A program made the translations under genes and the position numbers. 64,000 nucleotides of DNA, taken from the IMG/VR virus record IMGVR_UViG_3300034073_003542, positions 62,001-126,000 of that record; one strand, written 5' to 3'. This document shows, piece after piece, positions 2,320 through 62,749 of the stretch (position 1 is its first letter; each line of letters opens with the position of its first letter). Below the pieces are notes generated by a model. The model saw only the letters and a list, made by a program, of their open reading frames with translations, was not told the DNA's origin and ran no database searches.

Positions 2320-2338
2320 ACATATCTCCGTTTAGTTA

Positions 2339-2392
2339 TCAATCATCCATCATAAGTAAAAATAACACAAATAGTATTACAAATATTGGCAT
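2339..2392 (-). CDS. Possible 17-aa hydrophobic micropeptide MPIFVILFVLFLLMMDD
   Basis: Fills the primase-kinase gap exactly, starting 5 nt after the primase stop; no homology evidence. Confidence 0.3.
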   Translation of the reverse strand: MPIFVILFVLFLLMMDD

Positions 2393-2396
2393 AGTT

Positions 2397-3554: not shown

Positions 3555-5412
3555 CTTTTAGTTCGAAACCATCCTCTTCTTTATTATTGCCGTTCATAAT
3601 TTCTAATTTGGTTTTGCCCTCTGTAATTTTGGCACACCATCCCTTCATATGACAATTGATATAGTCATTACTGTCTAATCCTCCTCCGTGCCTACTAACA
3701 ATTGGAATTAGTTTACGATTACCATTATTAGGTCCGTCTTGTGCTAATTCTTCATCTGTTTTCTTTTTGAAGATAGAAAAATTAGAACACAACCATATGA
3801 TTCGGTCTGATCCACTAGCTGCCGACGTATCTTCCGAATTAATTCCGTCACGGTTTAGCTGCATAAAAGCTAGAATTGGAACCTGATAACGAACTGCAAA
3901 ATTATGTAAGCTGGTCATCATAAACCCAAGAACTTGATATTCTTTCATATCTTGAGAAATACCCTTACTATCCATTAATTTCAGATAGTCATAAATAATA
4001 ACACATGGTTTAGCATGGCCGTTTGCGTCGAGTCCAACTTCTTTTAGTAACCATCTACGCATAATAGCTAATTGTTCTTCGAACTCCATACCAGCTATTG
4101 TTTTGTAAAATAGTTTAGCTTGTTTCAATTCGTTAGCGGCTTCAAAAACCTTCTGTTTAATATTGGGCGATTGAGCAAATGTTCCTTTTTCGATAGAATT
4201 GATTTCTGTTTCCGTCATCATAGCCAATATTCTATATTTATGATCTTTGATGCTCATTTCAGTATCCATATTCAATACTGGTAGTTTATGGGTACAGGCT
4301 ATATATCGACCCATATTATCAGCCATTTGAGTTTTTCCAGTATTTTTTGTAACAACATAATTATCTGTTACATAAAGCTCGGCTTTTGTATTAACACTAA
4401 TACATTGTACTATTTTTTTGCCAATATTTTCTACTTTAGCTATCTGGTAATAAACTAGATCATTATTTATAAAGACAGGTATTTGCCAGTTTAATACATT
4501 ACTACTATACATTAATTCTTTTAGAGTAGTTTTGATTGGATGTTGTGAATTTATTTGTTTAGCTAGCCAAAAATGGTCAGAACAACATTCGGCATAGGCT
4601 CCATTAGACAATGTTATTCTATATACTTCTTTTTCGCCAAAAGGATAAACTCCTATAACTTCACACGTTGCGTTATTTTTTGACGGATCTACCAAAATAT
4701 CGCCAATCTTAACGTCACCCATTCTAATCCAACCATTTGGTGTTAAAATTTTAGCATCAAGAGGTTGCGCTTTTGGCCTCGCCCCAATAACATTGACTGT
4801 TCCTTTTCTTAATCCACCCCCAATAGATTGATCAAAAATAGGAAATCCTGTTGGAATGCCTACTTGGTCTACTGGATTATCTATTAGGTCTTGTAGAAAA
4901 CTATCTATATCTTTACTAATTTCTTCTGGATGATTTTCTGTGTCATTTAATAGAGAAGAGAAATCAAAAATTGCATCTTCTGCAATACCCAAAATATTCG
5001 TTACTGTTTCATTTCCCGTAATATCTAGCAGCTTATCTCCTGCTGTTTCAAGCTGTGTTCTAAGAAGACGCGCTATTTCTAGTTTACGTATTTTTGCAGC
5101 AAACCTTCTAACATTATCTATTGCTACTGGAAACTCCAAAATAGCTTTTAAATGCAGAGCTTCTTCTTTTTTTTCTATTTGTTGGGTTAGAGTTAAATCT
5201 TGGGCGGCGCTATAAATACTCGCCAAATCAATCTTAGAGAACTTATTGTTGTGTTCACAAATATGTTTAAGAATCTTGTATATTACTACATTACTATCAA
5301 CAGTAAAAGTAGAGGGTTGTATAATATCTGCGACATCTAAGTACGCATCTTCTCCATAACGACAAATTCCAGCCAATACCGCTCGTTCTGCCGCAGGATC
5401 GCATAATATCAT
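3514..5412 (-). CDS. dnaB: Replicative DNA helicase with mini-intein
   Basis: AERAVLAG N-terminus, GIPTGFPIFDQSIGGGL, Walker A GARPK|TGKT split by an intein, MDTEMS, IIYDYLKLM, FMQLNR. Confidence 0.93.
   Translation of the reverse strand: MILCDPAAERAVLAGICRYGEDAYLDVADIIQPSTFTVDSNVVIYKILKHICEHNNKFSKIDLASIYSAAQDLTLTQQIEKKEEALHLKAILEFPVAIDNVRRFAAKIRKLEIARLLRTQLETAGDKLLDITGNETVTNILGIAEDAIFDFSSLLNDTENHPEEISKDIDSFLQDLIDNPVDQVGIPTGFPIFDQSIGGGLRKGTVNVIGARPKAQPLDAKILTPNGWIRMGDVKIGDILVDPSKNNATCEVIGVYPFGEKEVYRITLSNGAYAECCSDHFWLAKQINSQHPIKTTLKELMYSSNVLNWQIPVFINNDLVYYQIAKVENIGKKIVQCISVNTKAELYVTDNYVVTKNTGKTQMADNMGRYIACTHKLPVLNMDTEMSIKDHKYRILAMMTETEINSIEKGTFAQSPNIKQKVFEAANELKQAKLFYKTIAGMEFEEQLAIMRRWLLKEVGLDANGHAKPCVIIYDYLKLMDSKGISQDMKEYQVLGFMMTSLHNFAVRYQVPILAFMQLNRDGINSEDTSAASGSDRIIWLCSNFSIFKKKTDEELAQDGPNNGNRKLIPIVSRHGGGLDSNDYINCHMKGWCAKITEGKTKLEIMNGNNKEEDGFELKDDNDNNEPEIPFD
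4342..4770 (-). mobile_element. 143-aa mini-intein in DnaB Walker A (class 3-type, Ala1, ends TKN)
   Basis: AQPLDAKILTPNG...CCSDHFW...VQCISV...YVTDNYVVTKN|T; removal restores GARPKTGKT; no endonuclease domain. Confidence 0.9.
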
Positions 5413-6327: not shown

Positions 6328-6721
6328 TAAGTAACGCTCCCCAATTTTCTATTTGATTGTAAGGAAAGACTATATATTTAATTCCATTAATTTCACACCA
6401 TTCTTTTTTCTCATTATCCCTTTTTTGTCCCAATAAAAATTGCAGCTTGTTGGTATGGAAAAATGGACAAAACTCATAATGTTGTTCTCCATGAACTTCT
6501 ACACATAATTTTTTAAGAGGCAAATAAAAGTCCAGATAAAGAGTTTCATTGCGACGTAAGGGAATTGGTACTTCTTCTAATAGTTGTAGGGTTGGATACG
6601 TGTCAACTAGTAGTTTTCTTGCCGCTAAATGATATTGGGATTTGTTTATATCATTAGCTTTAGCAAAATTGCCAGTAAGATTCCAATTATGTAACTGGTT
6701 ATCTAAATCTTTTATTCGCAT
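6320..6721 (-). CDS. Vsr/DUF559-like restriction-fold endonuclease
   Basis: LYLDFYLP...VEVHGEQHY...RDNEKKEWC motif. Confidence 0.7.
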   Translation of the reverse strand: MRIKDLDNQLHNWNLTGNFAKANDINKSQYHLAARKLLVDTYPTLQLLEEVPIPLRRNETLYLDFYLPLKKLCVEVHGEQHYEFCPFFHTNKLQFLLGQKRDNEKKEWCEINGIKYIVFPYNQIENWGALLNE

Positions 6722-8757
6722 TTAATACCCATAGTTTCCTTAACTGTTTTTAGTAAATCTAGATATACTTCTGGATGTTCTACTAGATAGTTTCTTACTT
6801 TTTCTATTCCTTGGAATTTTGGGGTATCTTTGACCGTTTTGAGCGTATACCAAGCGCCAGCCTTTGTAATTAAGCCCATATCGGCAGCTAGGTTAGCTAC
6901 GTCCGTTTGTTTATCTAGACCTTGACCGTATCTTAAATAGGCTGTAGCTGTACGATTAGGAGATCCTAGTGACGACCAAACAACTTGCCATTCAACTTCT
7001 TGACCAATTTGTTCTCCGTCAGTAGTTAGTGTCCAACCAGTAGTTTTTTTTGCTCGTAGCTTAACATCGGTCTGATATGTTATGGCCTGTCCACCCTTTT
7101 CTTTCCATTCTGATCCATAGCCAGTTGGATTACCCATTAAATGTGTAATGCCTATGACTATGTTTTTGTTGACCGGAATAACATTTCCAACCTTTCTACA
7201 GAACTTAGCTAATAGCTTTGCTCCGTCTGCTCGTTGCATTTTATCCATGTCACTGGTAATTTCAGCTTCTGTACACAGAGCGGAATAGCTGTCTACTATC
7301 AATATACAGCCAGGAACTTCATTGATAATTTTTTCTCCTATCTGGAGATATTCTTCTGCGTGTAAAATTTTCCCTTCTTGCGATCCTATGACATGGAAAC
7401 GATTTAAGTCTAGTCCAGATATACCTTCTAAGTCTCGCTTTTTAAGTCTACCTTCAATGTTTAGATAATACACTTCACGCGGTTTCTTAAGTGTTCCTTG
7501 GTATTCTGATTTTTGTGCAGTAGCGGCGAAATCTAAAGATAAACTAGTATTGTGCGTTACAATAAAATCATTTGTTAAATATAGTCCGTCTGGATTTTCG
7601 ATTTTAATACACATAGCTTCTTCGTTAGCGACCTTTTCAACTTTTGTAATTGTTCTAAATAAGTTAGGTTTGATTCTCACTTTTCCGGTCTTTTTTCTAG
7701 GAAGACTAAATAGTTTATCTAGAGTATTTCCACTAATAGTTAATCTATAGGATGGAAATTTTTTGCCATTTTTGCCAGAATAGCTAGTGAATCTTTTCTT
7801 GATTCTACACAAATAACCTAGGCTTTGTGCTAATTCTTGTACATCTTTAGCTAGCTGTTTCGATGTTGTAGAGTACTCTGTTCTATTTCTCTCCATATTA
7901 GATCCGTCTGTGTCCATTAATCCTTGCATTAATTTAAAGCGATTAGTCGTGCTAGCATATAAATATTCTTTAGGAATAAATTTGTTATGTGAATTTTTAC
8001 CAAATAAGTTTAGTGTTTTTAATTTGGCTCTAAGAGTATTTTCAAGCAAGAGTCCTCCACCAAAATTACCACTAATTGAATAGTCATATTTATCTTTACG
8101 TTTAAAAGATAAGTTATTTTCGTCACAATATTTTTGGAATTTGTCTAAAATATATTCATCTCCACTAGATATTATTATCGATTTAGTAATGCCTCCATCA
8201 CCAATCAAACATCCTAAAATATATGGATCTATTGGTAGCCTTTTTTCTTGTTTAAAATAAACAGGCTTAGTAACTGGAATCTTCCATTTCCATCTATCAG
8301 TATATTTTAATCCTTCGTCTAATATTTCTTTAAGAGTAATAGTTTTCCAATTTGTTTGTCTATTATTTTTTGATACAGTCCAGTTATGATCTAATCCACA
8401 ATAGGTTTTGGACCCATCATTAAATGTTACTCGATATATATCTTTTTTCCCTTGTGGGAATAGGCCAACAACTTTAGTGGTTTTACCATTAGGGCTGCAT
8501 ACCAAATCTCCAACTTTTAGGTTTTTTAGTTGTGTTGGTCCTTTAGGTGTGTAGATTATATCTGTTAATCTTTGTAGTTTACCTACTTTGGGCTGACCAG
8601 TTAATATAAAAAAACTGCCTTCTGGAACCCCACCATTGAGAGCAATATCAAGTCCGGGGCTAATAGGAATAATAACCTGTTTTCTATCAATAATGCTATT
8701 AGCGCTCGAAATTATATTTTCGCCAAATTCTTTACTAATATCTTCTTTAACTGCCAT
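6712..8757 (-). CDS. recA: RecA/UvsX recombinase with LAGLIDADG intein
   Basis: ISPGLDIALNGGVPEG, Walker A GQPKVGK|TS split by an intein, YLNIEGR, LIVDSYSAL, KGGQAITYQTDV, LRYGQGLD. Confidence 0.92.
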   Translation of the reverse strand: MAVKEDISKEFGENIISSANSIIDRKQVIIPISPGLDIALNGGVPEGSFFILTGQPKVGKLQRLTDIIYTPKGPTQLKNLKVGDLVCSPNGKTTKVVGLFPQGKKDIYRVTFNDGSKTYCGLDHNWTVSKNNRQTNWKTITLKEILDEGLKYTDRWKWKIPVTKPVYFKQEKRLPIDPYILGCLIGDGGITKSIIISSGDEYILDKFQKYCDENNLSFKRKDKYDYSISGNFGGGLLLENTLRAKLKTLNLFGKNSHNKFIPKEYLYASTTNRFKLMQGLMDTDGSNMERNRTEYSTTSKQLAKDVQELAQSLGYLCRIKKRFTSYSGKNGKKFPSYRLTISGNTLDKLFSLPRKKTGKVRIKPNLFRTITKVEKVANEEAMCIKIENPDGLYLTNDFIVTHNTSLSLDFAATAQKSEYQGTLKKPREVYYLNIEGRLKKRDLEGISGLDLNRFHVIGSQEGKILHAEEYLQIGEKIINEVPGCILIVDSYSALCTEAEITSDMDKMQRADGAKLLAKFCRKVGNVIPVNKNIVIGITHLMGNPTGYGSEWKEKGGQAITYQTDVKLRAKKTTGWTLTTDGEQIGQEVEWQVVWSSLGSPNRTATAYLRYGQGLDKQTDVANLAADMGLITKAGAWYTLKTVKDTPKFQGIEKVRNYLVEHPEVYLDLLKTVKETMGIKCE
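7549..8577 (-). mobile_element. 343-aa intein with LAGLIDADG homing endonuclease in RecA (class 3-type, Leu1)
   Basis: LQRLTDIIYTPKG...CGLDHNW...LGCLIGDG...LMQGLMDTDG...AMCIKI...FIVTHN|T. Confidence 0.92.
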
Positions 8758-13853: not shown

Positions 13854-15800
13854 TTAAAATAATTCGTCTACACTAAAACATACTGAATTTTTAGAGTATT
13901 CAACTGGTCTTGAGTTAAAGAAGTCTGTCATATTATTGCCTAGAATCTGTTCATCAAACCATGTTGTTTTTTTAAGCATTTCGTTGTCTACTCCAAATAC
14001 TGATTCATAGCCAATTTCTTTCAGAGAGGCATTTAAGCGATCCTTAATATATTCTTTCAAAAGATTTGAATTAAGATATTCGCTCTCATATCCATTAACG
14101 ATCCAATCAATGATCTCGCACTCATATTTTACTGCTTCTTTGGCTTCGTGCAAGATTTTTTTCTCTAGCTGTTCATCGAATAGGTCTGGATGTTCTTCTT
14201 TAATAGTATTAATGATTTTTATTCCAATCATAGAATGCAAACAATTTCCTGCAATAAATGTTTTACCGTCTAGTCTTGTTATAATAGCTCCAGAATCCAC
14301 TGATACGCAATATACATTGCCATTGTATTTAGTTATAGTTTTCTTTATTCCGTGTGAAACTGGATTATGGTCTATTTTTCTTAATCCAAGCTTATAACAT
14401 GGACTATCTTCATATCCTTCTTTTGTATTAGCATAGTAACTTGTTGCATACCCAGCACATATTGCTATAGATTGAACCATATCGATACACGATTTATTAG
14501 TAGAAGAATACCCTATACTGTCAGAGTCAGACCTTTTATATCCATCCCACTCAACTACTTCTTGTATAAAGTCTTCACACCATTCTAGAGATTTATTTTT
14601 AAGATCGACCCAATCAAAAGATTTATAGTCAAAATCATGATTAAATGTTATTCTATAGATAACTTCATTATCTTTATTTGGTTCTGATTTAGTATATGGA
14701 ATATTGCTCTTATTTAATATCCATTCCAGTCTCTCTTTTTTTCTATCCTTAGTTAATGCAAAAGAGTGTGTTTGCCCGCCATTTTTTCCTCTTTTTATTT
14801 TTTCTGCTTTGGTATTTTTCCAATACAAAATAGATCCGTCTGCTTGAATAGCTATCTTAAGTCTGTCTTCGTAAGACAAAATATTGTCTCCATCATTGTT
14901 TAATGTGCCACTAATTGGTATTTTTATATTTTTATGTAACTTAAGATCAATTGCTTTCTTTTTTTTGTAGTTGTCATAATTATCAAAGTAAACCATATCA
15001 TGATTTGGAGTAACTATGCACTTGTTTCCAGATCTACTAAAAGCGATAACATCTCCAGTATATTTTTTATTAGTTTTATGATTGACTTTAGTAAATTCTA
15101 TTAATCCTTCTGGAGTATATTGAGCTACATCATCTCCTACATTAATATCTCTAAAATCTACCCATCCTTTTGGGGTTAGTATTTCAGTGCCTTCAATATA
15201 GCATTCTTCTCTTGATGTATACTCAACCTGCTTATTTGTATCTTTTAGCATATTCTTAAATCGCCCAAAATAGCTAATAGTATAAAACTGACTAAATAGA
15301 GCAATATTTTCAACAAATAAAGTAAACAAAATTAATGAATAGATGAATTGTTTTTTATTATCTTCGTGGAATTTGTGTAGATGTTTGCGTAAGTAGTTTA
15401 CGCGTCCCTTAATAATATCTAATTCTAAAATCTTCTCAAAATTATCATCAATACCAAGTACTTCTAATAAACGCTCATAAGCATCCCCATGAATGACTTC
15501 AACATGAGCCATTGTATAACCAAGATCATTAAGAGAAGGATGAGGTAAATTCTCTCCCAGCTTCGCCCAAAACTTCTTGACCGAAATCTCTAATTGACCA
15601 ATTGTTGAAAGGGCGCGAATTATAATCTGTTGTTCTTGATCTGTTAAATTAACCAAAAAATCCTGTTTGTCGCTTTGGAAGTTGAATTCTCTGTGCGTCC
15701 AGAAGCCGTTGTGCATAGCTTCAATAAAGTCTTGGGTCCAGGGATAGTGATCAGGTTTACGGGAAATTTGTTCATTAAATATCATCTTTGATTGCTCCAT
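13854..15800 (-). CDS. nrdB: Class I ribonucleotide reductase beta subunit with intein
   Basis: EAMHNGFW, EVIHGDAY, FVENIALFSQF, SREE|CLH iron-ligand motif split by an intein, DFFNSRPVEY. Confidence 0.93.
   Translation of the reverse strand: MEQSKMIFNEQISRKPDHYPWTQDFIEAMHNGFWTHREFNFQSDKQDFLVNLTDQEQQIIIRALSTIGQLEISVKKFWAKLGENLPHPSLNDLGYTMAHVEVIHGDAYERLLEVLGIDDNFEKILELDIIKGRVNYLRKHLHKFHEDNKKQFIYSLILFTLFVENIALFSQFYTISYFGRFKNMLKDTNKQVEYTSREECYIEGTEILTPKGWVDFRDINVGDDVAQYTPEGLIEFTKVNHKTNKKYTGDVIAFSRSGNKCIVTPNHDMVYFDNYDNYKKKKAIDLKLHKNIKIPISGTLNNDGDNILSYEDRLKIAIQADGSILYWKNTKAEKIKRGKNGGQTHSFALTKDRKKERLEWILNKSNIPYTKSEPNKDNEVIYRITFNHDFDYKSFDWVDLKNKSLEWCEDFIQEVVEWDGYKRSDSDSIGYSSTNKSCIDMVQSIAICAGYATSYYANTKEGYEDSPCYKLGLRKIDHNPVSHGIKKTITKYNGNVYCVSVDSGAIITRLDGKTFIAGNCLHSMIGIKIINTIKEEHPDLFDEQLEKKILHEAKEAVKYECEIIDWIVNGYESEYLNSNLLKEYIKDRLNASLKEIGYESVFGVDNEMLKKTTWFDEQILGNNMTDFFNSRPVEYSKNSVCFSVDELF
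14244..15203 (-). mobile_element. 320-aa class 1 intein in NrdB with degenerate LAGLIDADG region, ends GN
   Basis: CYIEGTEILTPKG...VTPNH...IAIQADG...VVEWDG...VYCVSV...TFIAGN|C. Confidence 0.9.
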
Positions 15801-37728: not shown

Positions 37729-39294
37729 CTAAGGAGTTCCCCAACTTACTTGAGCAATATCTACAACCGCCACCCATCTTATATTTTTCGCCGCAACGCC
37801 CGTTACTCTTATTTCTAAAGCTTCGTTTGTGTCATCAGCTACTACAGAGGCGGTAGCTGTGGAGAGCGAAGCGTCCGTGTCTGTTGTGGAAGTAACCGAA
37901 CCAATAAGAGCGGTTCCATTTGCCGCATTATGTCTTATACCACCCTCAAACTTCCACCAAGCTCCTTCATTATCGGTATCGTTATAAGCAGAAAGTTTAA
38001 CGGTGAATTGCCAAGTTGTTTCGGCTGGAATTGTTAAACGAGCAGAACTTCCGTTAAGAAATAAAACCTGGTTTGCTGTAGCATCAGTAGTAGCGCGACG
38101 AGCTACAAGGATAAGATGTTGGGCGTCACCAGCAGTAGCGAATTGTCCTGCCGCATGAGCAAGAGAGCCATAGAGAGAGGCTTTTGCGTAAGATCCACCA
38201 GGAACAGAACTATAAGTAGCAGAAGCTGTGTTTGAGCGACCTCCTCCTACAGAGCTATAATTAGCAGAAGCTTGGTTTAATAAACCTCCAACCGCAGAAC
38301 TATAAGAGCCAGAAGCTGTGTTTTGTCTACCTCCTCCTACTACCGAACACGAAAAGCCAGAAGATGTGTTTGATTTACCTCCTCCAACAGAATTATGATA
38401 GCCACTTGCTTCATTTGATTCGCCTCCCACTATAGAACTATAATAACCAGAAGCTGTGTTTTGGCGACCTCCTCCTACAGAGCTATAATTTTGTGTTGCT
38501 GAGTTGAAAAAACCTCCCCCTACATAACTCCAATAGGCAGAAGCTGTGTTTGAGCGACCTCCACCAACAAAACCACAATAAGAAGAAGCTGTGTTTAAGT
38601 AACCTCCTCCTACAGAACTCGCATAGGCAGAAGCTTGGTTTTGGTAGCCTCCTCCTACAGAACTCATATCGGCAGAAGTTATATTGTATTTACCTCCTCC
38701 TACAAAACTATGAGAACCAGAAGCTGTGTTGCCGTTACCTCCTCCAACAGAACTATAGGTGGCAGAAGCTGTATTTGATAGACCTCCTCCAACAGTAGAG
38801 CTTTGTCCAGTTGCTTGGTTTGATTGACCTCCTCCAACAGTAGAGTTTTGTCCACTTGCTTCGTTTGATTGACCTCCCCCCACGGTTGATCCGTAGTTGC
38901 TTGCTTGATTGGAATAGCCGCCCCCAATGGTTGTGTATTCGCTGCTTGCTTGGTTGGAATTGCCGCCCCCAACGGTTGTGTAGAGGCCGCTTGCTGAATT
39001 GTACGAGCCGCCTCCAACGGTTGCGTAGGAGCCGCTTGCTGTGTTGAAAAAGCCGCCTCCAACGGCTGCGTAGTGGCTGCTTGCTTGATTGTTGCGACCG
39101 CCCCCAACGGCTGTGTAGTAGCCGCTTGCTGAATTGGAATGGCCGCCTCCAATAACTGAATAATTTCCAGACGCAACCTGTGAGCTAACACTACGATATT
39201 GCTGTAAATCAATAGCATTTACTCCTCTTGCATCTCCTTCTATATCTAACTGAAAAACTTCTGTTGATAAATTAGTTGTTGTTACTTTTTTCAT
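37729..39294 (-). CDS. Gly-rich 15-aa-repeat beta-solenoid adhesin/fibre (521 aa)
   Basis: About 22 repeats of xSxVGGGxxNxASxx; C-terminal HAAGQFAxxGDAQHLIL...IRWVAVVD domain. Confidence 0.75.
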   Translation of the reverse strand: MKKVTTTNLSTEVFQLDIEGDARGVNAIDLQQYRSVSSQVASGNYSVIGGGHSNSASGYYTAVGGGRNNQASSHYAAVGGGFFNTASGSYATVGGGSYNSASGLYTTVGGGNSNQASSEYTTIGGGYSNQASNYGSTVGGGQSNEASGQNSTVGGGQSNQATGQSSTVGGGLSNTASATYSSVGGGNGNTASGSHSFVGGGKYNITSADMSSVGGGYQNQASAYASSVGGGYLNTASSYCGFVGGGRSNTASAYWSYVGGGFFNSATQNYSSVGGGRQNTASGYYSSIVGGESNEASGYHNSVGGGKSNTSSGFSCSVVGGGRQNTASGSYSSAVGGLLNQASANYSSVGGGRSNTASATYSSVPGGSYAKASLYGSLAHAAGQFATAGDAQHLILVARRATTDATANQVLFLNGSSARLTIPAETTWQFTVKLSAYNDTDNEGAWWKFEGGIRHNAANGTALIGSVTSTTDTDASLSTATASVVADDTNEALEIRVTGVAAKNIRWVAVVDIAQVSWGTP

Positions 39295-39306
39295 TCTAAC
39301 CTCTTA

Positions 39307-41742
39307 TTACGGAGTTCCATAACTTGTTTGTACTATATCTACTACGGCCACCCAACGTATATTTGTTACAGCGATGCCTGTCACCTGGATCTCAAGAGAC
39401 TTACTTGTGTCATTTGCAACTATAGATGCGGTTGTTGTACTAAGAGCAGCGTCTTTTTCTTCTAAGACTTGGGTTACTGTTCCAACTATAGCTGTTGTAT
39501 CAGATCCATCTCTTTTTATGGCTCCAACAAATTCCCATGCTGCTGCCGCATCATTTGTGTCGTCATAAGCACTTAAATTAACTGTAAATTTCCATACAGT
39601 TTTAGCGACCGGTAGAATTAATTCGTCGTCTGTTCCATCTAAGAATAGAACTTGGTTAGCTGTGTCGTCCGTGGTTTCTCTGCGAGCTATAAGGATTAAA
39701 TGTTGGGCGTCTCCTCCAGCAGCGAATTGTCCTGCTGCATGAGCAAGAGCGCCCCAGTGAGCGGCTTTTGCTTGGTATCCACCCGGAATGGTTGCGTAGC
39801 TATTGCTTGCTGAATTGGCAGAGCCTCCTCCAATAATTGATTTATCTCCGCTTGCTGTGTTATTTACTCCACCAACAATACATGACAAATATCCACTAGA
39901 CGTATTTTGTGTACCTCCAACAGTAGCTGTCCATCCTCCGATTGCTATGTTATTACTGCCACCACCTATAAAACTATATTGATTACTTACTGTATTGAAG
40001 CCGCCACCAGCAATGGTTGCGCATTGGTCTGTTGCTGAATTGGAACGACCGCCTCCTACTGTTGCGTAGTTGGCCGAGCTTGTGTTACTGCGACCCCCAT
40101 TGATAACGCTAGAAGTTCCACTAGCAGCATTTAGTCCTCCGCCTCCAATAAAACTATCGTTTCCTGAAGCTGAATTTTGATACCCACCAACTACAGAACT
40201 ACATGTTGCTGTCGCTTCGTTGCTATATCCCCCAAGAACAGCACTATTGCCTCCAGAACTTGTGTTATAACGACCACCCGCTACTGTTGCGTAATCATAA
40301 GTTGCTGAGTTGGATCGACCCCCACCTACTATTGCATAGTTGGCAGAGCTTGTGTTGGAAAGGCCGCCTCCTACTGTTGCGTATTGGTAAGAGGCTGAGT
40401 TGGAGCGACCTCCTCCTACTGTTGCGTAGTAGCCAGAGCTTGTGTTGGAATAACCGCCTCCTACTGTTGCGTATTGGGCAGAGCTTTGGTTGGAATAACC
40501 GCCTCCTACTGTTGAGGCGTAGCCAGAGCTTTGGTTGTAACGACCGCCTCCTACTGTTGCGTAATTGTTAGAGGCCGAGTTGGATTGACCGCCTCCTACT
40601 GTTGCGCATTGGGCAGAGCTTTGGTTGGAATAGCCGCCTCCTACTGTTGCGTAATTGTTAGAAGCTGAGTTGTAGCGACCGCCTCCTACTGTTGCGCATT
40701 GGGCAGAGCTTTGGTTGGAATGACCGCCTCCTACTGTTGTTGATAGGGCAGAGCTTGTGTTTTCGCGACCTCCTCCTACTGTTGCGTAATAGGCAGAGCT
40801 TTGGTTGAAAAGACCGCCTCCTACTGTTGCGTAATTGGCAGAGCTTGTGTTGGAATAACCGCCTCCTACTGTTGCGTAATAGGCAGAGCTTTGGTTGAAA
40901 CTACCGCCTCCTACTGTTGCGTAATTGGCAGAGCTTGTGTTGGAAAGGCCGCCTCCTACTGTTGCGTAGTTATATGTTGCTGAATTAGATTGACCTCCTC
41001 CAACAGAACTATAATTACCAGAAGCTGTGTTGTACCAACCACCACCAACTGTTGATGCATAATAACCAGAAGCAGTATTACCTTGTCCGCCGCTTACTGT
41101 AGAAGAAAAAGCACTTGATGTATTAGAAGAACCTCCCCCAACTACTGATGAATTATTTGTTGCTTGATTAAAACCCCCACCACCAACAAAAGAATAATCA
41201 CCAGTACTTTGATTCGTTGTTCCGCCTACAACAATAGAGTGTTGTGAGCTTGCTGTATTACTAAAACCCCCCACTATTACCGATCCATATCCTGATGCTA
41301 CTTGGTTCGCAGCGAATCTAGTTTTTTGTAAATCAACTGCGTCTTCTCCTCTAGCATCACCGTCAGCGGTTCTTTGTATGGCACCTGTTCCGTTTTGGGC
41401 AAGAATCAGCGATCCGTTAGTATTGGTGCTTGTTACAGTATTACCATCAAAAGTAAGATTATCAACATCGATATCACCAGTAACAGTAAGGGTTGTTCCG
41501 TCAAAAGTTAGATTAGCTTCGGCGTTTAAGCCATCTATATCTCCAGTATTAGTAATAATACGATTATCGCCGGGATTTAAAACAACAGCCGCGCCATCAG
41601 AAGCTAAATTTACCAAATCACCAACTGTTATCTTTTTGGTTTCCTGATCACCAGTGGGATCATCCATGATCAAAATAACATCATCTAGAGATAGATCTCC
41701 GCTACCTGTTGGAAATTCATTAAATCTTAAAATTCTAGGCAT
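39307..41742 (-). CDS. Gly-rich 15-aa-repeat beta-solenoid adhesin/fibre (811 aa), paralogue of 37729-39294
   Basis: About 34 repeats YATVGGGxxNxSS; same ARGxxAxDLQ entry and GDAQHLIL C-terminal domain. Confidence 0.75.
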   Translation of the reverse strand: MPRILRFNEFPTGSGDLSLDDVILIMDDPTGDQETKKITVGDLVNLASDGAAVVLNPGDNRIITNTGDIDGLNAEANLTFDGTTLTVTGDIDVDNLTFDGNTVTSTNTNGSLILAQNGTGAIQRTADGDARGEDAVDLQKTRFAANQVASGYGSVIVGGFSNTASSQHSIVVGGTTNQSTGDYSFVGGGGFNQATNNSSVVGGGSSNTSSAFSSTVSGGQGNTASGYYASTVGGGWYNTASGNYSSVGGGQSNSATYNYATVGGGLSNTSSANYATVGGGSFNQSSAYYATVGGGYSNTSSANYATVGGGLFNQSSAYYATVGGGRENTSSALSTTVGGGHSNQSSAQCATVGGGRYNSASNNYATVGGGYSNQSSAQCATVGGGQSNSASNNYATVGGGRYNQSSGYASTVGGGYSNQSSAQYATVGGGYSNTSSGYYATVGGGRSNSASYQYATVGGGLSNTSSANYAIVGGGRSNSATYDYATVAGGRYNTSSGGNSAVLGGYSNEATATCSSVVGGYQNSASGNDSFIGGGGLNAASGTSSVINGGRSNTSSANYATVGGGRSNSATDQCATIAGGGFNTVSNQYSFIGGGSNNIAIGGWTATVGGTQNTSSGYLSCIVGGVNNTASGDKSIIGGGSANSASNSYATIPGGYQAKAAHWGALAHAAGQFAAGGDAQHLILIARRETTDDTANQVLFLDGTDDELILPVAKTVWKFTVNLSAYDDTNDAAAAWEFVGAIKRDGSDTTAIVGTVTQVLEEKDAALSTTTASIVANDTSKSLEIQVTGIAVTNIRWVAVVDIVQTSYGTP
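40021..41000 (-). repeat. 45-bp tandem coding repeats with near-identical core CCGCCTCCTACTGTTGCGTA
   Basis: About 15-20 consecutive units at 45-nt period, several recurring as 90-nt dimers. Confidence 0.9.
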
Positions 41743-53116: not shown

Positions 53117-53728
53117 TTATTTAACTAGCTGTCTAATGTTTTCCAAGCCCTTCTTTATATTAAGACGAACGGCTTCGCGTGACACCCCGAATTCTTTTCC
53201 TATATCATTCAGGCTCAAATCGTCAATATAGTATCTCTTGATTTGTTCTTTCTGTTTTTCGTTAACTACTCCTGATTCTAACAGAGCATTAAGGTCTTGT
53301 TTTATGAGATTTATTTGTTCATTGCTTGATGACTCAAATGATGGATCAGTTTGTTTTGGATCAGCAAAAATTTCATGTAGAGAATATTCTTGGTCGTTAC
53401 TTGGTTTAGTAATTCTATCTAAACTAATCATTTGATAAGGGCCGTTTTCTTTTTTGTATTTGCCACTAACATAAGACTTGATTGCCCATATCGCACACTG
53501 ATTCCTATATGAATATGCTGTTTTTGATTTTTGTGTCTTTCCTTTTCTTGTTGGATCAAATCTACTATCGCCCAACATAATTGCTGTAGCAACGTCACTA
53601 ATAGCGTCCTCGCTTTGTAACATTTCGTTTTTGAGTCCTGTATAAAACTTTGGAGCAAATTTACTAATCATTTTTTTGGCTAGTGTTAAGTAATCGCCCA
53701 AAGATGCGCATTGTGTCATTGTTTGCAT
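53117..53728 (-). CDS. Phage RNA polymerase sigma factor (sigma70-like regions 2 and 4)
   Basis: RFDPTR...YRNQCAIWAI; RYYIDDLSLNDIGKEFGVSREAVR HTH; start set at MQTM after an AGGA RBS (ORF track extends to 53803). Confidence 0.8.
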   Translation of the reverse strand: MQTMTQCASLGDYLTLAKKMISKFAPKFYTGLKNEMLQSEDAISDVATAIMLGDSRFDPTRKGKTQKSKTAYSYRNQCAIWAIKSYVSGKYKKENGPYQMISLDRITKPSNDQEYSLHEIFADPKQTDPSFESSSNEQINLIKQDLNALLESGVVNEKQKEQIKRYYIDDLSLNDIGKEFGVSREAVRLNIKKGLENIRQLVK

Positions 53729-53819
53729 ATTTTTCCTTTTCTTTTTCTTGTTAGTTGTCCTAGTACTAGTTTTTTTAGTACTGTTTTGATTTTTCCTGTT
53801 CATTACGCTTCAAGTTCCT

Positions 53820-56377: not shown

Positions 56378-57136
56378 TCAAATCTCCTTAATAAAACCCT
56401 TGATTGTATTCTCTCTAAAAATATCTAGATAAGGTTGCTTGCTACGATGTACTTCTTCCAAACATCTTGCCAAATGTTCTGGATTTGTGCTTCTACCTTG
56501 GGGGTTTTCATAATACAATCCCACTGGATGATTTAGTAATTCCAATTTTGCTCCACCAAATGCACACCGAAGCCAAAATTCTCCGTCTGCGGCAGAAAAA
56601 TAGCTTTCGTCAAAATATCCAAAACGGTCATGCAAACTCTTTCTCCAAAGAGGCATACAATGAGGACTATTGTGATTTAATAAATTTTCAAGAGAAAAGC
56701 TAGAAATAGGATAAACTAAATTATAGCTATTGTCCTCATATTTTTCGTTGGCTGTTCTTGAAACATAAGTGATACCATAAGCTACATCAATATGGGGTTT
56801 TCTTACTAGAAGTTTATATAGTAATTCTATTCCATGACACGGTTTACGGTCATCAACATTCCAGTTGCCTATAATGTCAGCCTGACATTGTTTAATTGCA
56901 ATATTCCATGCTGGATAAAGTCCTGGATCTTCATCTAATCGAATATATTTAACGTTTTCATACATCCTACTCCTTGGCTCGATATACTTTCTTTCATTTT
57001 CTGGAGAATTACAGTCCAAGATAACAAATTCTGTATCTTCAAACATAGTTTGCTTGAAGACATCTTCCAGATATCCCTCTATAAATTTTTCACCCTTATA
57101 GACAGAACAGAAGATAGATACTTTGTATTTTTTCAT
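56378..57136 (-). CDS. Glycosyltransferase, GT2/GT-A
   Basis: VSIFCSVY, EFVILD, GLYPAWNIAI, WNVDD, ADGEFWLR. Confidence 0.85.
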   Translation of the reverse strand: MKKYKVSIFCSVYKGEKFIEGYLEDVFKQTMFEDTEFVILDCNSPENERKYIEPRSRMYENVKYIRLDEDPGLYPAWNIAIKQCQADIIGNWNVDDRKPCHGIELLYKLLVRKPHIDVAYGITYVSRTANEKYEDNSYNLVYPISSFSLENLLNHNSPHCMPLWRKSLHDRFGYFDESYFSAADGEFWLRCAFGGAKLELLNHPVGLYYENPQGRSTNPEHLARCLEEVHRSKQPYLDIFRENTIKGFIKEI

Positions 57137-58146
57137 TATGAAAGAACCTTAGAGGCAATTAAACATCCTTTAGAAACGCTGTGTAGAGGATCTACGGCAT
57201 GAACAACTTCACTAATTTTGACAGGAAAATCTAATTCGCCCAATTTCTTTTTGAATGTATCTACATATCCGTCAGCTTTTGATGTTCCGCCCGCGATAAC
57301 TATTTTAAGTGGATCTTTGAACTTTGGCAAAGCTTTATGTCCACCTAGAGCAAAAGCTAATTGTTTAACTGTATAATCAATTAATCTTTCATAATATGTA
57401 GCAACAGCCTCTAAGATCGGATTAGGATTAGTTTCGCCCACTTTAAATCCACCGCCCTCTTTTTCGGCTTGTACAACGCTGTCTGGTTCACCAGTTGCAA
57501 CGGCACTCATACGATCAATCCAGTCGCCCGATTTTGTTGTACTAAATACAACCGTTGGTTCACCATTCAACATCACACAAACATTTGTCATTCCAGAACC
57601 ACAACTAATAGCAATACCAGTATAATCGTCATTCTCAAGTTCAGCGTAACACAGAGCTTCTGCTTCGTTGATAGCTCTGGCATCATACCCACATTCAGTT
57701 AAGATAGATTTTACAACATCTTCATGATAACCAACGTCAAAATCTTCTGTTTCTTGGTCTACTGGTTGAGCAGGAACGCAGAACACTAATTTGTCGCCTG
57801 GGTTAGCTGCTTGCCCAACAACTTCTTTGAGAATAAACGCTAGAACTCTTTTTGCATCCTTTTCTTTGGCCGACACTACTCCTCTATACATGGGGCGTTT
57901 TGCTGTGTCGTTTCGCTCAATAGCTTTTTCAATTGCGTCTTTACCAAGTATGATAAATGAGCCATCAACGTCCTTGATAAAGGTTTTTCCTGCTAAACCC
58001 TTCTCGATCATTTTTGTGGCTACAGGAGTAGTAGGCTTAATAACATAAAAAGCATCACGAAATTCTTTATATTCGACATTGCCAGCATCATTGTCTTTTG
58101 ACAAAACAATAAAACTCGTACCCACATCTAAACCAACATTTGCCAT
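57136..58146 (-). CDS. Actin-fold ATPase (ParM/MreB/MamK/FtsA superfamily), 336 aa
   Basis: Phosphate-1 VGLDVGTS, connect-1 INEAEAL, phosphate-2 ISCGSGMTN, adenosine IVIAGGTS, connect-2 DPLHSVSKG; start set at MANVG. Confidence 0.85.
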   Translation of the reverse strand: MANVGLDVGTSFIVLSKDNDAGNVEYKEFRDAFYVIKPTTPVATKMIEKGLAGKTFIKDVDGSFIILGKDAIEKAIERNDTAKRPMYRGVVSAKEKDAKRVLAFILKEVVGQAANPGDKLVFCVPAQPVDQETEDFDVGYHEDVVKSILTECGYDARAINEAEALCYAELENDDYTGIAISCGSGMTNVCVMLNGEPTVVFSTTKSGDWIDRMSAVATGEPDSVVQAEKEGGGFKVGETNPNPILEAVATYYERLIDYTVKQLAFALGGHKALPKFKDPLKIVIAGGTSKADGYVDTFKKKLGELDFPVKISEVVHAVDPLHSVSKGCLIASKVLS

Positions 58147-58165
58147 AATTTTACTCCTATTATTA

Positions 58166-58477
58166 CTATTTTTTGAGACCTTTGAGTTTGTCAACTGCCG
58201 ACGATATATTTTCGTCAGATTTTTTGGTTTCGCCCAGCGACCCATATTTTTTTTCCATGCCGTCAGTTGTGATTTTGGTCACTATTTTCTGATCTTCTAT
58301 AGATATAGTATTGGGGCGAGCTTGATTGTCAACATCCTTTTGCTTCTTAAAGAAAGATTGTGAAGGGGTTCCGAAATTTTGCTGACTATTCAATTTTCCT
58401 ATTAAATATCCCAACAATCCAATAATAATATTGGAAGATAGTACGGATGCGATAATGAGTGAATCGGTATGAGACAT
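58166..58477 (-). CDS. Single N-terminal TM protein co-transcribed with the actin-like gene
   Basis: LIIASVLSSNIIIGLLGYLIG then charged tail ending AVDKLKGLKK. Confidence 0.65.
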   Translation of the reverse strand: MSHTDSLIIASVLSSNIIIGLLGYLIGKLNSQQNFGTPSQSFFKKQKDVDNQARPNTISIEDQKIVTKITTDGMEKKYGSLGETKKSDENISSAVDKLKGLKK

Positions 58478-59046
58478 TATAATTGGCTTAAATATGGTAG
58501 GTTTTTATCTTTTTCTGAGAGGATAATATCCTCAATACCGATAGGATATTCTATATTTACGTCAGGATCATTCCATTTTAGACCTTGCTCTGTTTTTGGA
58601 TTGTGAGAAGATTCTGTCGTTAAATATTGGAATATAGACCTATCCGATATTGTTAATACACCATGAGCGAAACCGGGAGGAATATACATCATTTTTCCCT
58701 CTGGTTTATCTAAACAGCCATATCCCCATAGATAATCATTTCCCACTAAAATGTGTGCTGTATATTTACCAAATGTTTTAGATCCTTTTCTTACATCAAC
58801 AGCAATATCAAATATTCCACCAATAATTGGTTTAACTATTTTACCTTGACTATCGGCCCCAGTATGAAAATGAAGACCTCTTAATACGCCATATTTAGAG
58901 CTAGCTAATTTTGATTGTTTTACTTCTACATTTAATTGATCCTTATTAAAAGTTTCACATAAATATCCTCTATCGTCCTCATAATAATCATGATGAATCA
59001 ATAGAACCTCTGGCAGTATTGTGTCTTTTTCAAATCTAATATTCAT
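58477..59046 (-). CDS. rfbC: dTDP-4-dehydrorhamnose 3,5-epimerase
   Basis: DDRGY, GVLRGLHF, QGKIV, DIAVDVRKGSKTFG, YIPPGFAHG, WNDP, LSEKD. Confidence 0.93.
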   Translation of the reverse strand: MNIRFEKDTILPEVLLIHHDYYEDDRGYLCETFNKDQLNVEVKQSKLASSKYGVLRGLHFHTGADSQGKIVKPIIGGIFDIAVDVRKGSKTFGKYTAHILVGNDYLWGYGCLDKPEGKMMYIPPGFAHGVLTISDRSIFQYLTTESSHNPKTEQGLKWNDPDVNIEYPIGIEDIILSEKDKNLPYLSQL

Positions 59047-59681
59047 CTTTTTAAGTTTCTTCCTATTAAATATCCATTACGACTATTTTTGTTATCAATA
59101 AGGATTTCAAACTCCTCGCTGTTCGCCCTGATATATTCTGCCGCATCATAATTTTTAAGAGTTTCTGTATCGTCCAAGACTATGATTTTTGATCTACCTT
59201 TTAGAATAAAAAATTCAGCTTTAGAACAATATTCTCCTCCATCAAGTATAAGTAAATCTATTTCGTGTGGTATTTTATTTAAGGCTATTGGAGACTCTTT
59301 GTGTTCTCTAATTGATTCCTTAAACCATTCTTTTTGTTGCTCTCTAGAATATGTTGTAAAAAATCTATCTGGATAATTATCTAGATTAATAAGATCTTCT
59401 TCTATTGTAATTCGCCCAAATACTAAATCTACTATCCATAAATCGTCTTTAAGATTTTTTTGAGCTTCTAAATATCTGTCATAATTAGCTTCTATTGACA
59501 TTACTAATGAAGGACTAGATAATATCCATTTACTAGAATCTTTCCATCCATCAATGATACATTTGGTTGAACCCAATCCATTCCATGTACCAATATCTAC
59601 TATTGTTCTTATGTCTTGATGTTTGGCAAGCTCGTAAATCTTTTGTCCTATTTCGGAATCTCTATTGATTTGTCCGCTCAT
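59043..59681 (-). CDS. Class I SAM-dependent methyltransferase-like protein
   Basis: IVDIGTWNGLGST, SIEAN, IDLLILDGGEY, IVLDD. Confidence 0.7.
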   Translation of the reverse strand: MSGQINRDSEIGQKIYELAKHQDIRTIVDIGTWNGLGSTKCIIDGWKDSSKWILSSPSLVMSIEANYDRYLEAQKNLKDDLWIVDLVFGRITIEEDLINLDNYPDRFFTTYSREQQKEWFKESIREHKESPIALNKIPHEIDLLILDGGEYCSKAEFFILKGRSKIIVLDDTETLKNYDAAEYIRANSEEFEILIDNKNSRNGYLIGRNLKR

Positions 59682-61066
59682 GATTTAGGGAAGTTTGTTG
59701 GACTTCCATCCTTTGAGTATTCTGAAAATTTAGGTCGATAATTATCTCCAAGCCAATCCATAGTCTTCGCTAAAACTCCATCATGTTCTGGACTACCATC
59801 ATACAATTCAAATTTTGAAAGGGTTCCAGAGTTGTCCAGACTACTCAATTCTTCCCATAGTTCTGTTCCTGGAAATGGTATACAATCACTTATTTGCCAA
59901 TGAACTTTATTGTTATTTTGCGCGCCTATTGCGGCTAATTCTTTCAGTGTTGCTTGATCTTTTTCCCAAGAATTATCTTTTTCTCCTGGTAGATTTTTCA
60001 TTGTAGTAAAATGAAATTCCATATTGGAAAAATGAGTAACTAAATATTTGAGGTTATCGTATGACACTTTTGTGTCCATATGCTTCTTTACGTTGTCTGA
60101 CAAAACCTGATTAAAAGTTTCTACTCCAAATCTCATGCCAACACAACCAGAGTCTACCATTATATCATAAAGCTCTGGCTTACTCGTATCTATTCTACCC
60201 ATCATTGTCCAGGGCAAACCAAGCTTTTTTAATCCGTCACACATTTCTGTGATTCGCTTTGGACCCAAATTCCAAGTATCATCATCAAAAAATATGCTCT
60301 TGAGTGAGTCTCCAAGTAATGTTCGCATTTGATTTAATTCATCTATAACAGCACTAGCTGATCTACTTCTATACTTACCATTATTAATAACATTAGGCCA
60401 TTGACAATAAGTACACTTAAATGGACATCCGCGAGAAGTACTAATAGTTAATTGTATTCTGGGCGTTCCCATAGAAGGATCGTAATAATTTGCGATATAA
60501 GATGGGCGGAGTGGTAGAAAATTATCACCATTTGGTAGAGTGTCTAGATTTGTTAAGTGTTCAAATTTATAGATAGATTTAGATTCATTTCCTTTTTGGC
60601 AAATATCTAAGGCCGGGATATCATATTCACCAATAATACAATTATCAATATAATCCAGTTTTATACATTCTTCTGCATAAACCTTCATATGAGGTCCACA
60701 AAACACATTTCTACAATTTAGTTCTTGTTTTGCCCATTGAGCGAACTCTCTATTTAGTTCATATGTTGGAGTTGAAACATCGTAAAAAACAACATCTGGT
60801 TTATACTCCAGGAACATACGCTTAGAATTATTGAGATTACTATGTCGTAATGCAACACCATCATATAATTCTACTTCAAATCCATGAGACTGAACATATT
60901 TAGCAGCATAACCCAACCAAAAAGGAAACGGAGCATACCCATGAAAGTGTGATCCTTTATTTGTCCAAGGCCAACGAGAACCAGCATTTGGTCCTGTATG
61001 AATCTCTCCATTGATTATTCTAACGTATGGTATATTTGCGAATAAAATTTTCATGATTGTATCCAT
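59678..61066 (-). CDS. B12-binding radical SAM protein
   Basis: N-terminal cobalamin-binding-like domain; SRGCPFKCTYC; FFDDDTW; SGCVGMRFGVET. Confidence 0.88.
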   Translation of the reverse strand: MDTIMKILFANIPYVRIINGEIHTGPNAGSRWPWTNKGSHFHGYAPFPFWLGYAAKYVQSHGFEVELYDGVALRHSNLNNSKRMFLEYKPDVVFYDVSTPTYELNREFAQWAKQELNCRNVFCGPHMKVYAEECIKLDYIDNCIIGEYDIPALDICQKGNESKSIYKFEHLTNLDTLPNGDNFLPLRPSYIANYYDPSMGTPRIQLTISTSRGCPFKCTYCQWPNVINNGKYRSRSASAVIDELNQMRTLLGDSLKSIFFDDDTWNLGPKRITEMCDGLKKLGLPWTMMGRIDTSKPELYDIMVDSGCVGMRFGVETFNQVLSDNVKKHMDTKVSYDNLKYLVTHFSNMEFHFTTMKNLPGEKDNSWEKDQATLKELAAIGAQNNNKVHWQISDCIPFPGTELWEELSSLDNSGTLSKFELYDGSPEHDGVLAKTMDWLGDNYRPKFSEYSKDGSPTNFPKS

Positions 61067-61920
61067 TCCTTAAAATTTGCTAGTCTGTGTTTTATAGTAT
61101 GATTTTCAATAGTTTTGTGGTAAGCTGTTTGACGAAATGGCATAGTATAGTCGGGATGCTTTAAATAGAACTCTATAGCCTTTTCGCACTCAGTCTTATT
61201 TTTTACGAATACCATACATCCATCAAAATTATCAACTAAATCTTGTGACGTATCAGAAATAATAAAACCTTGACATGCCATGATATTAAAAAGACGAAAA
61301 TTAAAAGTTCCATAATCAAGATGTTCTTTCAAATGAGCGTTGAGACAAATAATGGAACTAGTATATAACTTTCTTTCACCTTCTAATGATATCTTTCCTT
61401 TGCAACATTCGTCATTCCATGATTGTGGATTTCCATAAATAGAAAGTCCATATGGTTTTGCAGATAGGATATAGTCTTCTGTTGTTTGTTTATCTCTTAT
61501 ATTATTCCCAACAAAACAGCAGTTAATATAGAAATTGCTATCAAAATCTGGATAATAAATATCTGGATCTGTTCCGAATTGACAAACCAATCCTTCTTCC
61601 TCACATGCTTCTTGCATTTTTTTTGATGTAAAAATGTATTTATTATAGCGATGTTTGTGTTGCTGGAACATTTCTACTGTGCCGGGCCAATAAGGCTTTG
61701 GAAACACATTTTGTAGATATAGAACTTTAATGGGCGAATTTGAATTGTCTTGTAGTAGAGGGCTAAAAGATATGGAAATGTCGTGATCGCCAGGAGCGTT
61801 AAGGGTCGCCCCTAATTCTTTTGCCCACATTCTTGCTAGAAGCTCGTCACCTTGGACATTGGCTCCATTATTTTGTATTGTTAAAGAAGTTGTTGATGTT
61901 GATAAGATATTAATTTTCAT
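61051..61920 (-). CDS. CgeB-like / glycosyltransferase family 1-2 protein
   Basis: FVGN, IYGNP, YTSSIICLNAH, NFRLFNIMACQGFIISD, HTIKHR. Confidence 0.8.
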   Translation of the reverse strand: MKINILSTSTTSLTIQNNGANVQGDELLARMWAKELGATLNAPGDHDISISFSPLLQDNSNSPIKVLYLQNVFPKPYWPGTVEMFQQHKHRYNKYIFTSKKMQEACEEEGLVCQFGTDPDIYYPDFDSNFYINCCFVGNNIRDKQTTEDYILSAKPYGLSIYGNPQSWNDECCKGKISLEGERKLYTSSIICLNAHLKEHLDYGTFNFRLFNIMACQGFIISDTSQDLVDNFDGCMVFVKNKTECEKAIEFYLKHPDYTMPFRQTAYHKTIENHTIKHRLANFKEWIQS

Positions 61921-62749
61921 GAGTCATCCTAAAAAGCCCCTGATCTATTGTATTTGGTAGATCGTCAAACATCCTGTTGTATTTTGCTGGATTTAGAGAT
62001 ATGTCTTTTGGAAATCTTGTTGGGATTGTGTCTATGGGCTTTAATAGTTTTTCGTTTTTACCAAAAGCCAGAGCTACTTTCTTATAAAGATTGTATCGAT
62101 TTGATGCCCATGCAGCAAGATGAATAAGTTTAATTTTATTTACATCGTCAAACATAACTCGCTCAAGCATTTCGGCAAAATTTATAACATATGTTGGGCT
62201 ATTAATCACTTTTCTATAACACTCTATAATTTCACCTTTATCTAATTCATCTAATAGCCATTTTATCCACGGAGATCCACTTCCATAAAGACCAGAAGTT
62301 CTAACTACAATACCATTTGAAGCATCGTTTGTTGTGATTTCTCCCAACATCTTACTAATTCCATAAAAAGTTTTGGGGTTCGCTTGACTCTTTTCTGTAT
62401 AAATTCCTCCTTCATCACCAGAAAAAACATAGTCTGTTGATATATAAATAAATTTTATGTCACTAATAATTGTTTCAAGAATTGTTTTGGGTGCTTCTGT
62501 ATTTATTTGTGTGGCTAATTCTTTATTTTGTTCACATAAATTAATATCTTTTATACCAGCAGCATAAATTATATGTGAATAATAGGGTTTATTTTTAGAG
62601 CTAAAATATTTTCTTACATCCACATCATTGGTTAAATCAAGGTCTTTTCTTCCTATAATATGTGTGGTATACTTTTGAGAAAAAAATTTGTAAAGATTAG
62701 TCCCAACAAATCCGTTTCCCACTATCAATATTTGTTTTTGTGGGTGCAT
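61910..62749 (-). CDS. rfbD: dTDP-4-dehydrorhamnose reductase
   Basis: GNGFVG, ISTDYVFSG, YGISK (YxxxK), VVRTSGLYG, SPTY. Confidence 0.88.
   Translation of the reverse strand: MHPQKQILIVGNGFVGTNLYKFFSQKYTTHIIGRKDLDLTNDVDVRKYFSSKNKPYYSHIIYAAGIKDINLCEQNKELATQINTEAPKTILETIISDIKFIYISTDYVFSGDEGGIYTEKSQANPKTFYGISKMLGEITTNDASNGIVVRTSGLYGSGSPWIKWLLDELDKGEIIECYRKVINSPTYVINFAEMLERVMFDDVNKIKLIHLAAWASNRYNLYKKVALAFGKNEKLLKPIDTIPTRFPKDISLNPAKYNRMFDDLPNTIDQGLFRMTHEN

Follow-up and report, generated by a model that had tools for sequence, protein, structure and literature searches.

A Volactin-family actin and a predicted membrane-anchored partner protein form a conserved two-gene cassette in large uncultured phages

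We describe a two-gene cassette in a 210-kb uncultured phage that encodes an actin-like protein of the Volactin family and, directly upstream, a small single-pass membrane protein which is predicted to grip the actin by its C-terminal tail. The same pair is kept in about 110 viral loci, and it probably constitutes a phage-built, membrane-tethered cytoskeleton. Polymerisation, membrane insertion and cargo are, however, inferred only. The window, that is the whole stretch of DNA that was analysed (64,000 nucleotides), corresponds to bases 62001–126000 of the IMG/VR virus record IMGVR_UViG_3300034073_003542, which has 209,847 bases and is rated 100% complete by CheckV; its G+C is about 35%. The features of the cassette are, in window coordinates:

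57136–58146, minus strand: gene of the actin-like ATPase, 336 aa (P0001), Volactin family
58154–58158, minus strand: Shine-Dalgarno-like AGGAG, 7 nt before the ATG of the actin gene
58166–58477, minus strand: gene of the predicted 103-aa single-pass membrane partner (P0002), its ATG overlapping the stop of the upstream rmlC-like gene
58400–58459, minus strand: codons 7–26 of the partner, predicted transmembrane helix
58169–58306, minus strand: codons 58–103 of the partner, conserved tail with predicted actin binding, ending in the helix 92–102

The actin gene starts with the ATG at 58146, stops at 57136 and begins 19 nt downstream of the partner gene. A longer frame of 369 aa from an ATG at 58245 would overlap the upstream gene, and as the homologues start at the MxxxGLDVGT position, 336 aa is the right length. 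The five nucleotide-binding motifs of the actin superfamily are found at residues 7–11 (DVGTS), 160–164 (NEAEA), 181–187 (SCGSGMT), 284–289 (IAGGTS) and 323–327 (SVSKG), and their key residues (D7, G9, T10, E161, G183, G185, G286, G287 and G327) are invariant across 40 relatives of 30–85% identity. The partner has a hydrophobic stretch at about residues 7–26 and a basic C-terminus. No tandem or direct repeat array was found near the pair. The neighbouring genes are indeed sugar-modification genes: a GT2 glycosyltransferase (56378–57136), RmlC (58477–59046), a B12/radical-SAM protein (59678–61066), a glycosyltransferase (61051–61920) and RmlD (61910–62749). Thus, what the original prediction had observed, namely an actin-fold protein with five motifs next to a membrane protein gene, without a repeat array and within a glycosylation cluster, holds in every detail.

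The actin is a full-length member of the Pfam family Volactin (PF25216), with 197.7 bits against a cut-off of 35 and residues 4–331 matching profile positions 3–320 of 321; a search at the level of the whole genome gave the same result. Other families stay below their cut-offs: MreB with 18.9 against 27 bits (PF06723) and 12.8 against 365.75 bits (TIGR00904), salactin with 24.4 against 400 bits (NF053533) and ROK with 14.9 against 22.9 bits. No ParM family was among the Pfam or NCBIfam hits, no FtsA membership was found, and PHROGs returned no family for the actin and only a chance-level hit for the partner. An AlphaFold2 model built on the alignment of 40 sequences is confident (pLDDT 93, pTM 0.90) and shows a plain four-subdomain actin. 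The best solved matches to this model are MreB (1jcf, the top Foldseek hit), the BeeR filament (8r2n) and the MamK filament (5ljv, TM-score 0.73). The first 30 ranks are occupied by MreB, MamK, BeeR, actin and Arp structures, whereas PilM and FtsA appear at ranks 33–46 and EutJ at rank 37. The identity to MreB, MamK or actin structures is only 12–19%, and in fact a search of the PDB with the single sequence found no chain. A profile of the family, however, finds MamK first (E 5.5e-13), then MreB, FtsA and BeeR, and no other proteins in the PDB. We therefore regard the protein as an actin of the polymerising kind. The founding member of the family, volactin from Haloferax volcanii, forms dynamic filaments that touch the membrane by their tips (PMC10869688), but for the phage protein itself polymerisation is inferred.

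Actins of this family are not rare in metagenomic large phages, contrary to the premise of the original prediction. A word search found 1858 protein clusters, the best 120 of which are all 80–85% identical, metagenomic and located on contigs of up to 230 kb. IMG/VR holds 255 close loci, and with a profile of distant members 416 viral stretches on contigs of up to 618 kb are found. In contrast, a megablast search with 12 kb against the GenBank phages returned nothing, and tblastn found only two huge phages at 34–36% identity. Cellular relatives at 30–38% identity occur in bacteria (Omnitrophota, Planctomycetota, Magnetococcales, Nitrospirota and Desulfosarcina) and in archaea (Haloferacaceae and other Halobacteria, Archaeoglobaceae and Thermoplasmatales); for the relatives in Omnitrophota and Nitrospirota an identity with Mad28 was considered without being settled. 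Hits in MAGs at 74–81% identity are short contigs binned with unrelated phyla and are thus probably phage DNA. In a quick, unrooted tree the actin of the window falls into a viral clade with SH-aLRT support of 100, whose sister is a small group of actins with an N-terminal extension of about 110 residues. Both are apart from the clade of Halobacteria and Archaeoglobi that contains the haloarchaeal volactins, and from two huge-phage clades, and the viral label requires at least six changes on the tree. In this tree the protein thus does not group with volactin proper. Of the papers mentioning volactin, none of those examined by title is concerned with phages, and the volactin paper itself does not mention phages or viruses (PMC10869688). 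Literature searches on phage or jumbo-phage actins also turned up nothing on this family, although a further one was swamped by matches to ‘Actinobacteria’.

The small membrane protein is a co-conserved partner of the actin. A word search with its sequence alone found only itself, and the family became apparent only through synteny and a profile. In 76 of the 80 closest loci an open reading frame of 94–124 aa with an N-terminal hydrophobic helix ends 1–51 nt, mostly 1–4 nt, before the start of the actin gene. Clustering by gene order shows the pair in all 80 loci; in three of them a homing endonuclease is inserted between both genes and in three more the small frame was masked by an antisense-ORF artefact of our gene picking. 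In addition, an iterated HMM of the tail finds the partner upstream of every full-length actin with at least 69% identity to the actin of the window (about 110 viral loci) and nowhere else among 6215 open reading frames. A profile search finds 392 such proteins of 85–129 aa, none of which has a Pfam domain.

The partner diverges much faster than the actin, with a median pairwise identity of 42.6% compared to 84.7%. Among the 47 variants aligned, the median identity is 27% in residues 1–57 but 61% in residues 58–103, which suggests selection on the tail, and the conserved tail carries the pattern I.ID..K.V..I.T...EKKY..LG..K.S.ENIS.S.NKLKN.K. When modelled alone, the partner consists of a confident helix at residues 3–33 (pLDDT above 90), a low-confidence stretch at 34–91 and a short helix at 92–102. 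All 47 variants have a hydrophobic 19-mer of at least 1.79 on the Kyte-Doolittle scale. Lysine plus arginine averages 0.13 in the 15 residues before the hydrophobic helix and 1.55 in the 15 residues after it; 43 of 47 variants have more after than before and none has fewer. By the positive-inside rule this puts the tail in the cytoplasm.

The pair is found in at least three gene contexts and thus moves as a unit. In most relatives the order is RuvB-like ATPase, secreted thioredoxin-like protein, partner, actin, HNH, and onward, and two further contexts exist in the loci L027/L028 and L045 (our numbering of the 80 close loci); relatives also place the pair after cluster c10 of the gene-order clustering. 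In the genome of the window the flanking genes of the common arrangement lie next to each other, and the pair sits further on, after an island of about 8 kb of sugar genes (58477 to about 66179) and before a deoxyribosyltransferase-like gene that relatives also have. Among the 80 closest loci, whose flanks were mapped, only this phage and a second record with 100% identity (L002) have the pair next to sugar genes, whereas the relatives have no such island at this place. These results support a two-gene functional unit and argue against a role tied to glycan synthesis.

In order to ask whether both proteins bind each other, the actin was co-folded with residues 52–103 of the partner. The score was 0.75, compared to 0.00 for the best of three controls. 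The mark was reached by 58 of 80 solved complexes and by 2 of 110 mismatched pairs, but these counts hold only roughly as our own alignments were used. The runs agree in at least 96% of contacts, and the pLDDT of the partner is at least 80. The model thus supports binding but does not show it, and since like complexes, that is peptides in actin-fold clefts, have been solved, part of the score may come from the memory of the predictor. In the co-fold, residues 63–102 of the partner touch the actin. The contacts with the lowest error join partner residues 90–101 to actin residues 167–175, 194–196 and 326–335, and further contacts involve actin residues 18–29, 51–67, 99–109 and 137–148. According to the secondary structure of the model, residues 161–169 and 323–334 are the two hinge helices, connect 1 and connect 2, which in actin and ParM line the cleft between subdomains IA and IIA. 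The C-terminal helix of ParR and many actin-binding proteins use this cleft at the filament end; to map this knowledge onto the phage protein is our inference.

Taken together, we suggest that both genes are a self-contained cytoskeletal cassette of the phage, a reading which we consider somewhat more likely than not. In this view the 336-aa protein binds ATP and most likely polymerises into filaments in the infected cell, like the founding member of the family and its nearest solved relatives. The 103-aa protein would be inserted in the inner membrane with a short N-terminus outside and with a flexible tail of about 58 residues and the conserved C-terminal module in the cytoplasm. This module is predicted to wrap the actin, its last helix (residues 90–102) lying against the two hinge helices (actin 161–175 and 323–335), so that the likely outcome would be a tethering of filament ends, or of nucleating monomers, to the membrane. 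It would be an adaptor-plus-actin system in which the anchor of the adaptor is the membrane and not DNA. The gene pair, its conservation and its mobility are shown by sequence; the actin fold, the arrangement of transmembrane helix, flexible tether and terminal helix, and the binding of the tail to the cleft are predictions with support; and ATP-dependent polymerisation, the anchoring or nucleation of filament ends at the inner membrane and a role in phage replication or assembly are inferred. Our best guess on the purpose is the spatial organisation of replication or assembly in a large phage that has no tubulin, as no tubulin-family gene was found in the genome. That inteins sit in the actin gene of two phage clades fits a protein that matters to the phage. 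Nevertheless, no RNA run holds the locus, which was found only in DNA runs, and no cargo-binding element was found, that is neither a DNA-binding domain nor repeats. In addition, a partner that fills the IA/IIA cleft could sequester monomers instead of anchoring filaments.

The interpretation given in the original prediction is therefore partly supported. A membrane-tethered actin system, its first suggestion, is the best reading, and of the findings that would have spoken against it and could be checked none was obtained: the protein does not cluster with sugar kinases or BcrAD-type activators and the membrane gene is co-conserved. In contrast, an MreB- or FtsA-like scaffold for glycan synthesis and the assumed rarity of phage actins are not supported.

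When compared to volactin (VolA, HVO_2015) of Haloferax volcanii, the phage actin belongs to the same Pfam family over its full length, and archaeal members also have a membrane protein gene next door (DUF7139). However, the identity is 33–36%, the partner is a protein of about 100 aa with one predicted transmembrane helix and no detectable homology to DUF7139, and the setting is a bacteriophage and not an archaeal chromosome. The closest functional parallel is AlpC/AlpA of prophage CGP3 of Corynebacterium glutamicum, a phage-borne actin with a co-transcribed adaptor encoded upstream, whose filaments point to the membrane and which is needed for efficient phage DNA replication; AlpA binds DNA repeats (alpS) (PMC4446434). 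Here the adaptor gene likewise lies upstream on the same strand, but the adaptor is a predicted membrane protein and no repeats were found near the pair. In the type II plasmid partition system ParM/ParR/parC a small adaptor enters the cleft between subdomains IA and IIA at the filament end with its C-terminal helix, and the same region is predicted here. Nevertheless, the phage actin has no ParM-family match, the partner has a transmembrane helix, a disordered tail and a short helix in place of a DNA-binding fold, no centromere repeats were found and the gene order is reversed. MamK, the nearest solved relative by profile and by fold, and MreB, which acts with RodZ, both work at membranes through partner proteins. 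The PhuZ spindle of nucleus-forming jumbo phages is also a phage-encoded polymer that organises infection in large phages, but PhuZ is a tubulin and thus of a different protein superfamily.

Among the alternatives, a scaffold that remodels the host, by which the membrane-bound actin reshapes or enlarges the cell or blocks its division, survives best but appears unlikely. Volactin itself acts in cell-shape change (PMC10869688), the nearest folds include MreB, and the partner is a predicted membrane protein with no cargo-binding part. On the other hand, the identity to MreB is low, the MreB profile stays below its cut-off and no wall-synthesis genes are conserved beside the pair; on host shape there is no evidence either way. 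More doubtful is a non-filamentous membrane platform or monomer-holding pair, in which the protein works as a PilM/PilN-like or FtsA/FtsN-like ATP switch bound to a membrane peptide without long dynamic filaments. PilM and FtsA are among the fold matches, FtsA appears in the profile search and the predicted partner site covers a cleft that filaments also use, but the best sequence and fold relatives (MamK, MreB, BeeR and volactin) are filament formers and the model has no extra IC-type domain as in FtsA or PilM. A scaffold for the neighbouring glycan-synthesis enzymes is very unlikely, since in its favour speaks only the close packing of the pair between the rmlC-like and GT2 genes with overlapping stop and start codons, a context which among the 80 closest loci is peculiar to this phage and its identical second record. 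Finally, a monomeric sugar kinase, BcrAD-type activator or Hsp70-like chaperone can practically be dismissed, as the weak ROK match and EutJ at fold rank 37 stand against the full-length Volactin match and a profile search and top 30 folds without such proteins.

Known phage cytoskeletons are the PhuZ tubulin spindle and a single studied actin, AlpC. What is new here is a separate viral branch of the known Volactin family together with an adaptor that is anchored, by prediction, in the membrane instead of on DNA, in a cassette that is widespread in environmental large phages, compact and directly testable, with two small proteins and a defined predicted interface. Tentatively, large phages without tubulin might thus build a widespread, so far undescribed cytoskeleton of ATP-driven actin filaments whose ends are held at the host membrane by a dedicated one-pass adaptor. 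Equally tentatively, Volactin-family actins in archaea, bacteria and viruses would share one design, in which an adjacent adaptor gene combines a variable anchor (transmembrane helices such as in DUF7139, coiled coil or zinc ribbon) with a short C-terminal helix that enters the IA/IIA cleft. This would explain how volactin filaments attach to the membrane by their tips, an open question for which DUF7139 is a candidate answer.

Cellular and other viral family members also have an adjacent gene with a variable anchor and a short basic amphipathic C-terminal helix. Haloferacaceae and Archaeoglobaceae have DUF7139 membrane proteins (162.8 and 56.3 bits), Magnetococcales have 2-TM proteins of about 140 aa, Planctomycetota and Omnitrophota have coiled-coil proteins, Desulfosarcina and Neomarinimicrobiota have proteins with a cysteine-rich N-terminus (possibly a zinc ribbon, as read from the sequences alone), and one huge-phage clade has soluble proteins of 71–91 aa ending in WAIPDF..KIKFGK. 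The upstream or adjacent proteins of the cellular relatives in Magnetococcales, Archaeoglobaceae, Planctomycetota, Omnitrophota and others end in similar helices (...VARKLASMQRG, ...TKALKSIEERMGK, ...SALDRLKNMRGG). However, homology to the phage partner could not be established statistically, as hmmsearch gave E values of 0.3 or worse, hhalign gave P values of 0.01 or worse and the iterated HMM stopped inside the phage clade. We therefore treat the resemblance as analogy, that is a shared design and not a shared family.

With regard to the surroundings of the cassette, a scan for promoters and terminators gave nothing above chance, no tRNA was found in the window, and a query with a structural protein to find the host gave one tail-fibre hit. 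The open reading frames were translated without an alternative genetic code. The PHROG matches include virion structural proteins, a DnaB-like helicase and ribonucleotide reductase, and an open reading frame of 228 aa at 53117–53803 appears sigma-factor-like from its translation alone.

The actin gene holds an intein (Hint plus LAGLIDADG) in two different phage clades, namely in the loci L089 (position 2061–4172) and L195 (position 1930–4059). One of these inteins sits after about residue 204 of the actin and the other after about residue 184, and thus they occupy separate insertion sites in conserved parts of the protein. In addition, three genes at the positions 3514–5412, 6712–8757, and 13854–15800 of the window, the DnaB-like helicase, a RecA/UvsX-like protein, and a ribonucleotide reductase subunit, are over-long and give split or extra PHROG matches, which suggests inteins or fused homing endonucleases.

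The genes adjacent to the actin differ between the members of the Volactin family. In both Haloferacaceae and Archaeoglobaceae the archaeal Volactin-family genes lie next to a DUF7139 (PF23600) membrane protein (position 1922–2797 in locus L109, position 2239–2985 in locus L136, and the downstream open reading frames in the loci L140 and L147). This protein is a candidate for the unknown factor that holds the volactin filament tips at the membrane. In the relatives of the huge phage LR756511 (loci L164–L195), on the other hand, a different small upstream partner is found, which has a length of 71–91 amino acids, is devoid of a transmembrane helix, and has the conserved end WAIPDF..K(I/V)KFGK. 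In the Planctomycetota loci L092, L098, L104–L106, and L117 two actin-like genes lie in tandem after a coiled-coil gene, and the second of these is fused into a protein of 580–648 amino acids, with the Volactin domain at residues 158–477 of the L092 protein. The sister group of the actin clade of the window (loci L197, L206, L209, and L090; 43–45% identity) carries an N-terminal extension of about 110 residues on the actin. In L090 the upstream open reading frame ends ...AADKLRRLRKLKGNK, much like the partner protein encoded in the window.

With regard to the genomic surroundings, an island of about 8 kb of sugar-modification genes which related phages lack at this place extends from position 58477 of the window to about 66179 and thereby runs past the end of the window. 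The island comprises RmlC, RmlD, a B12/radical-SAM enzyme, glycosyltransferases, and DUF6165. A further block at position 37729–41742 of the window has a G+C content of 0.45 compared to about 0.35 elsewhere and holds two large open reading frames of 521 and 811 amino acids, both without a PHROG match, the first of which has a short tail-fibre-like match to Cyanophage Cy-LDV1.
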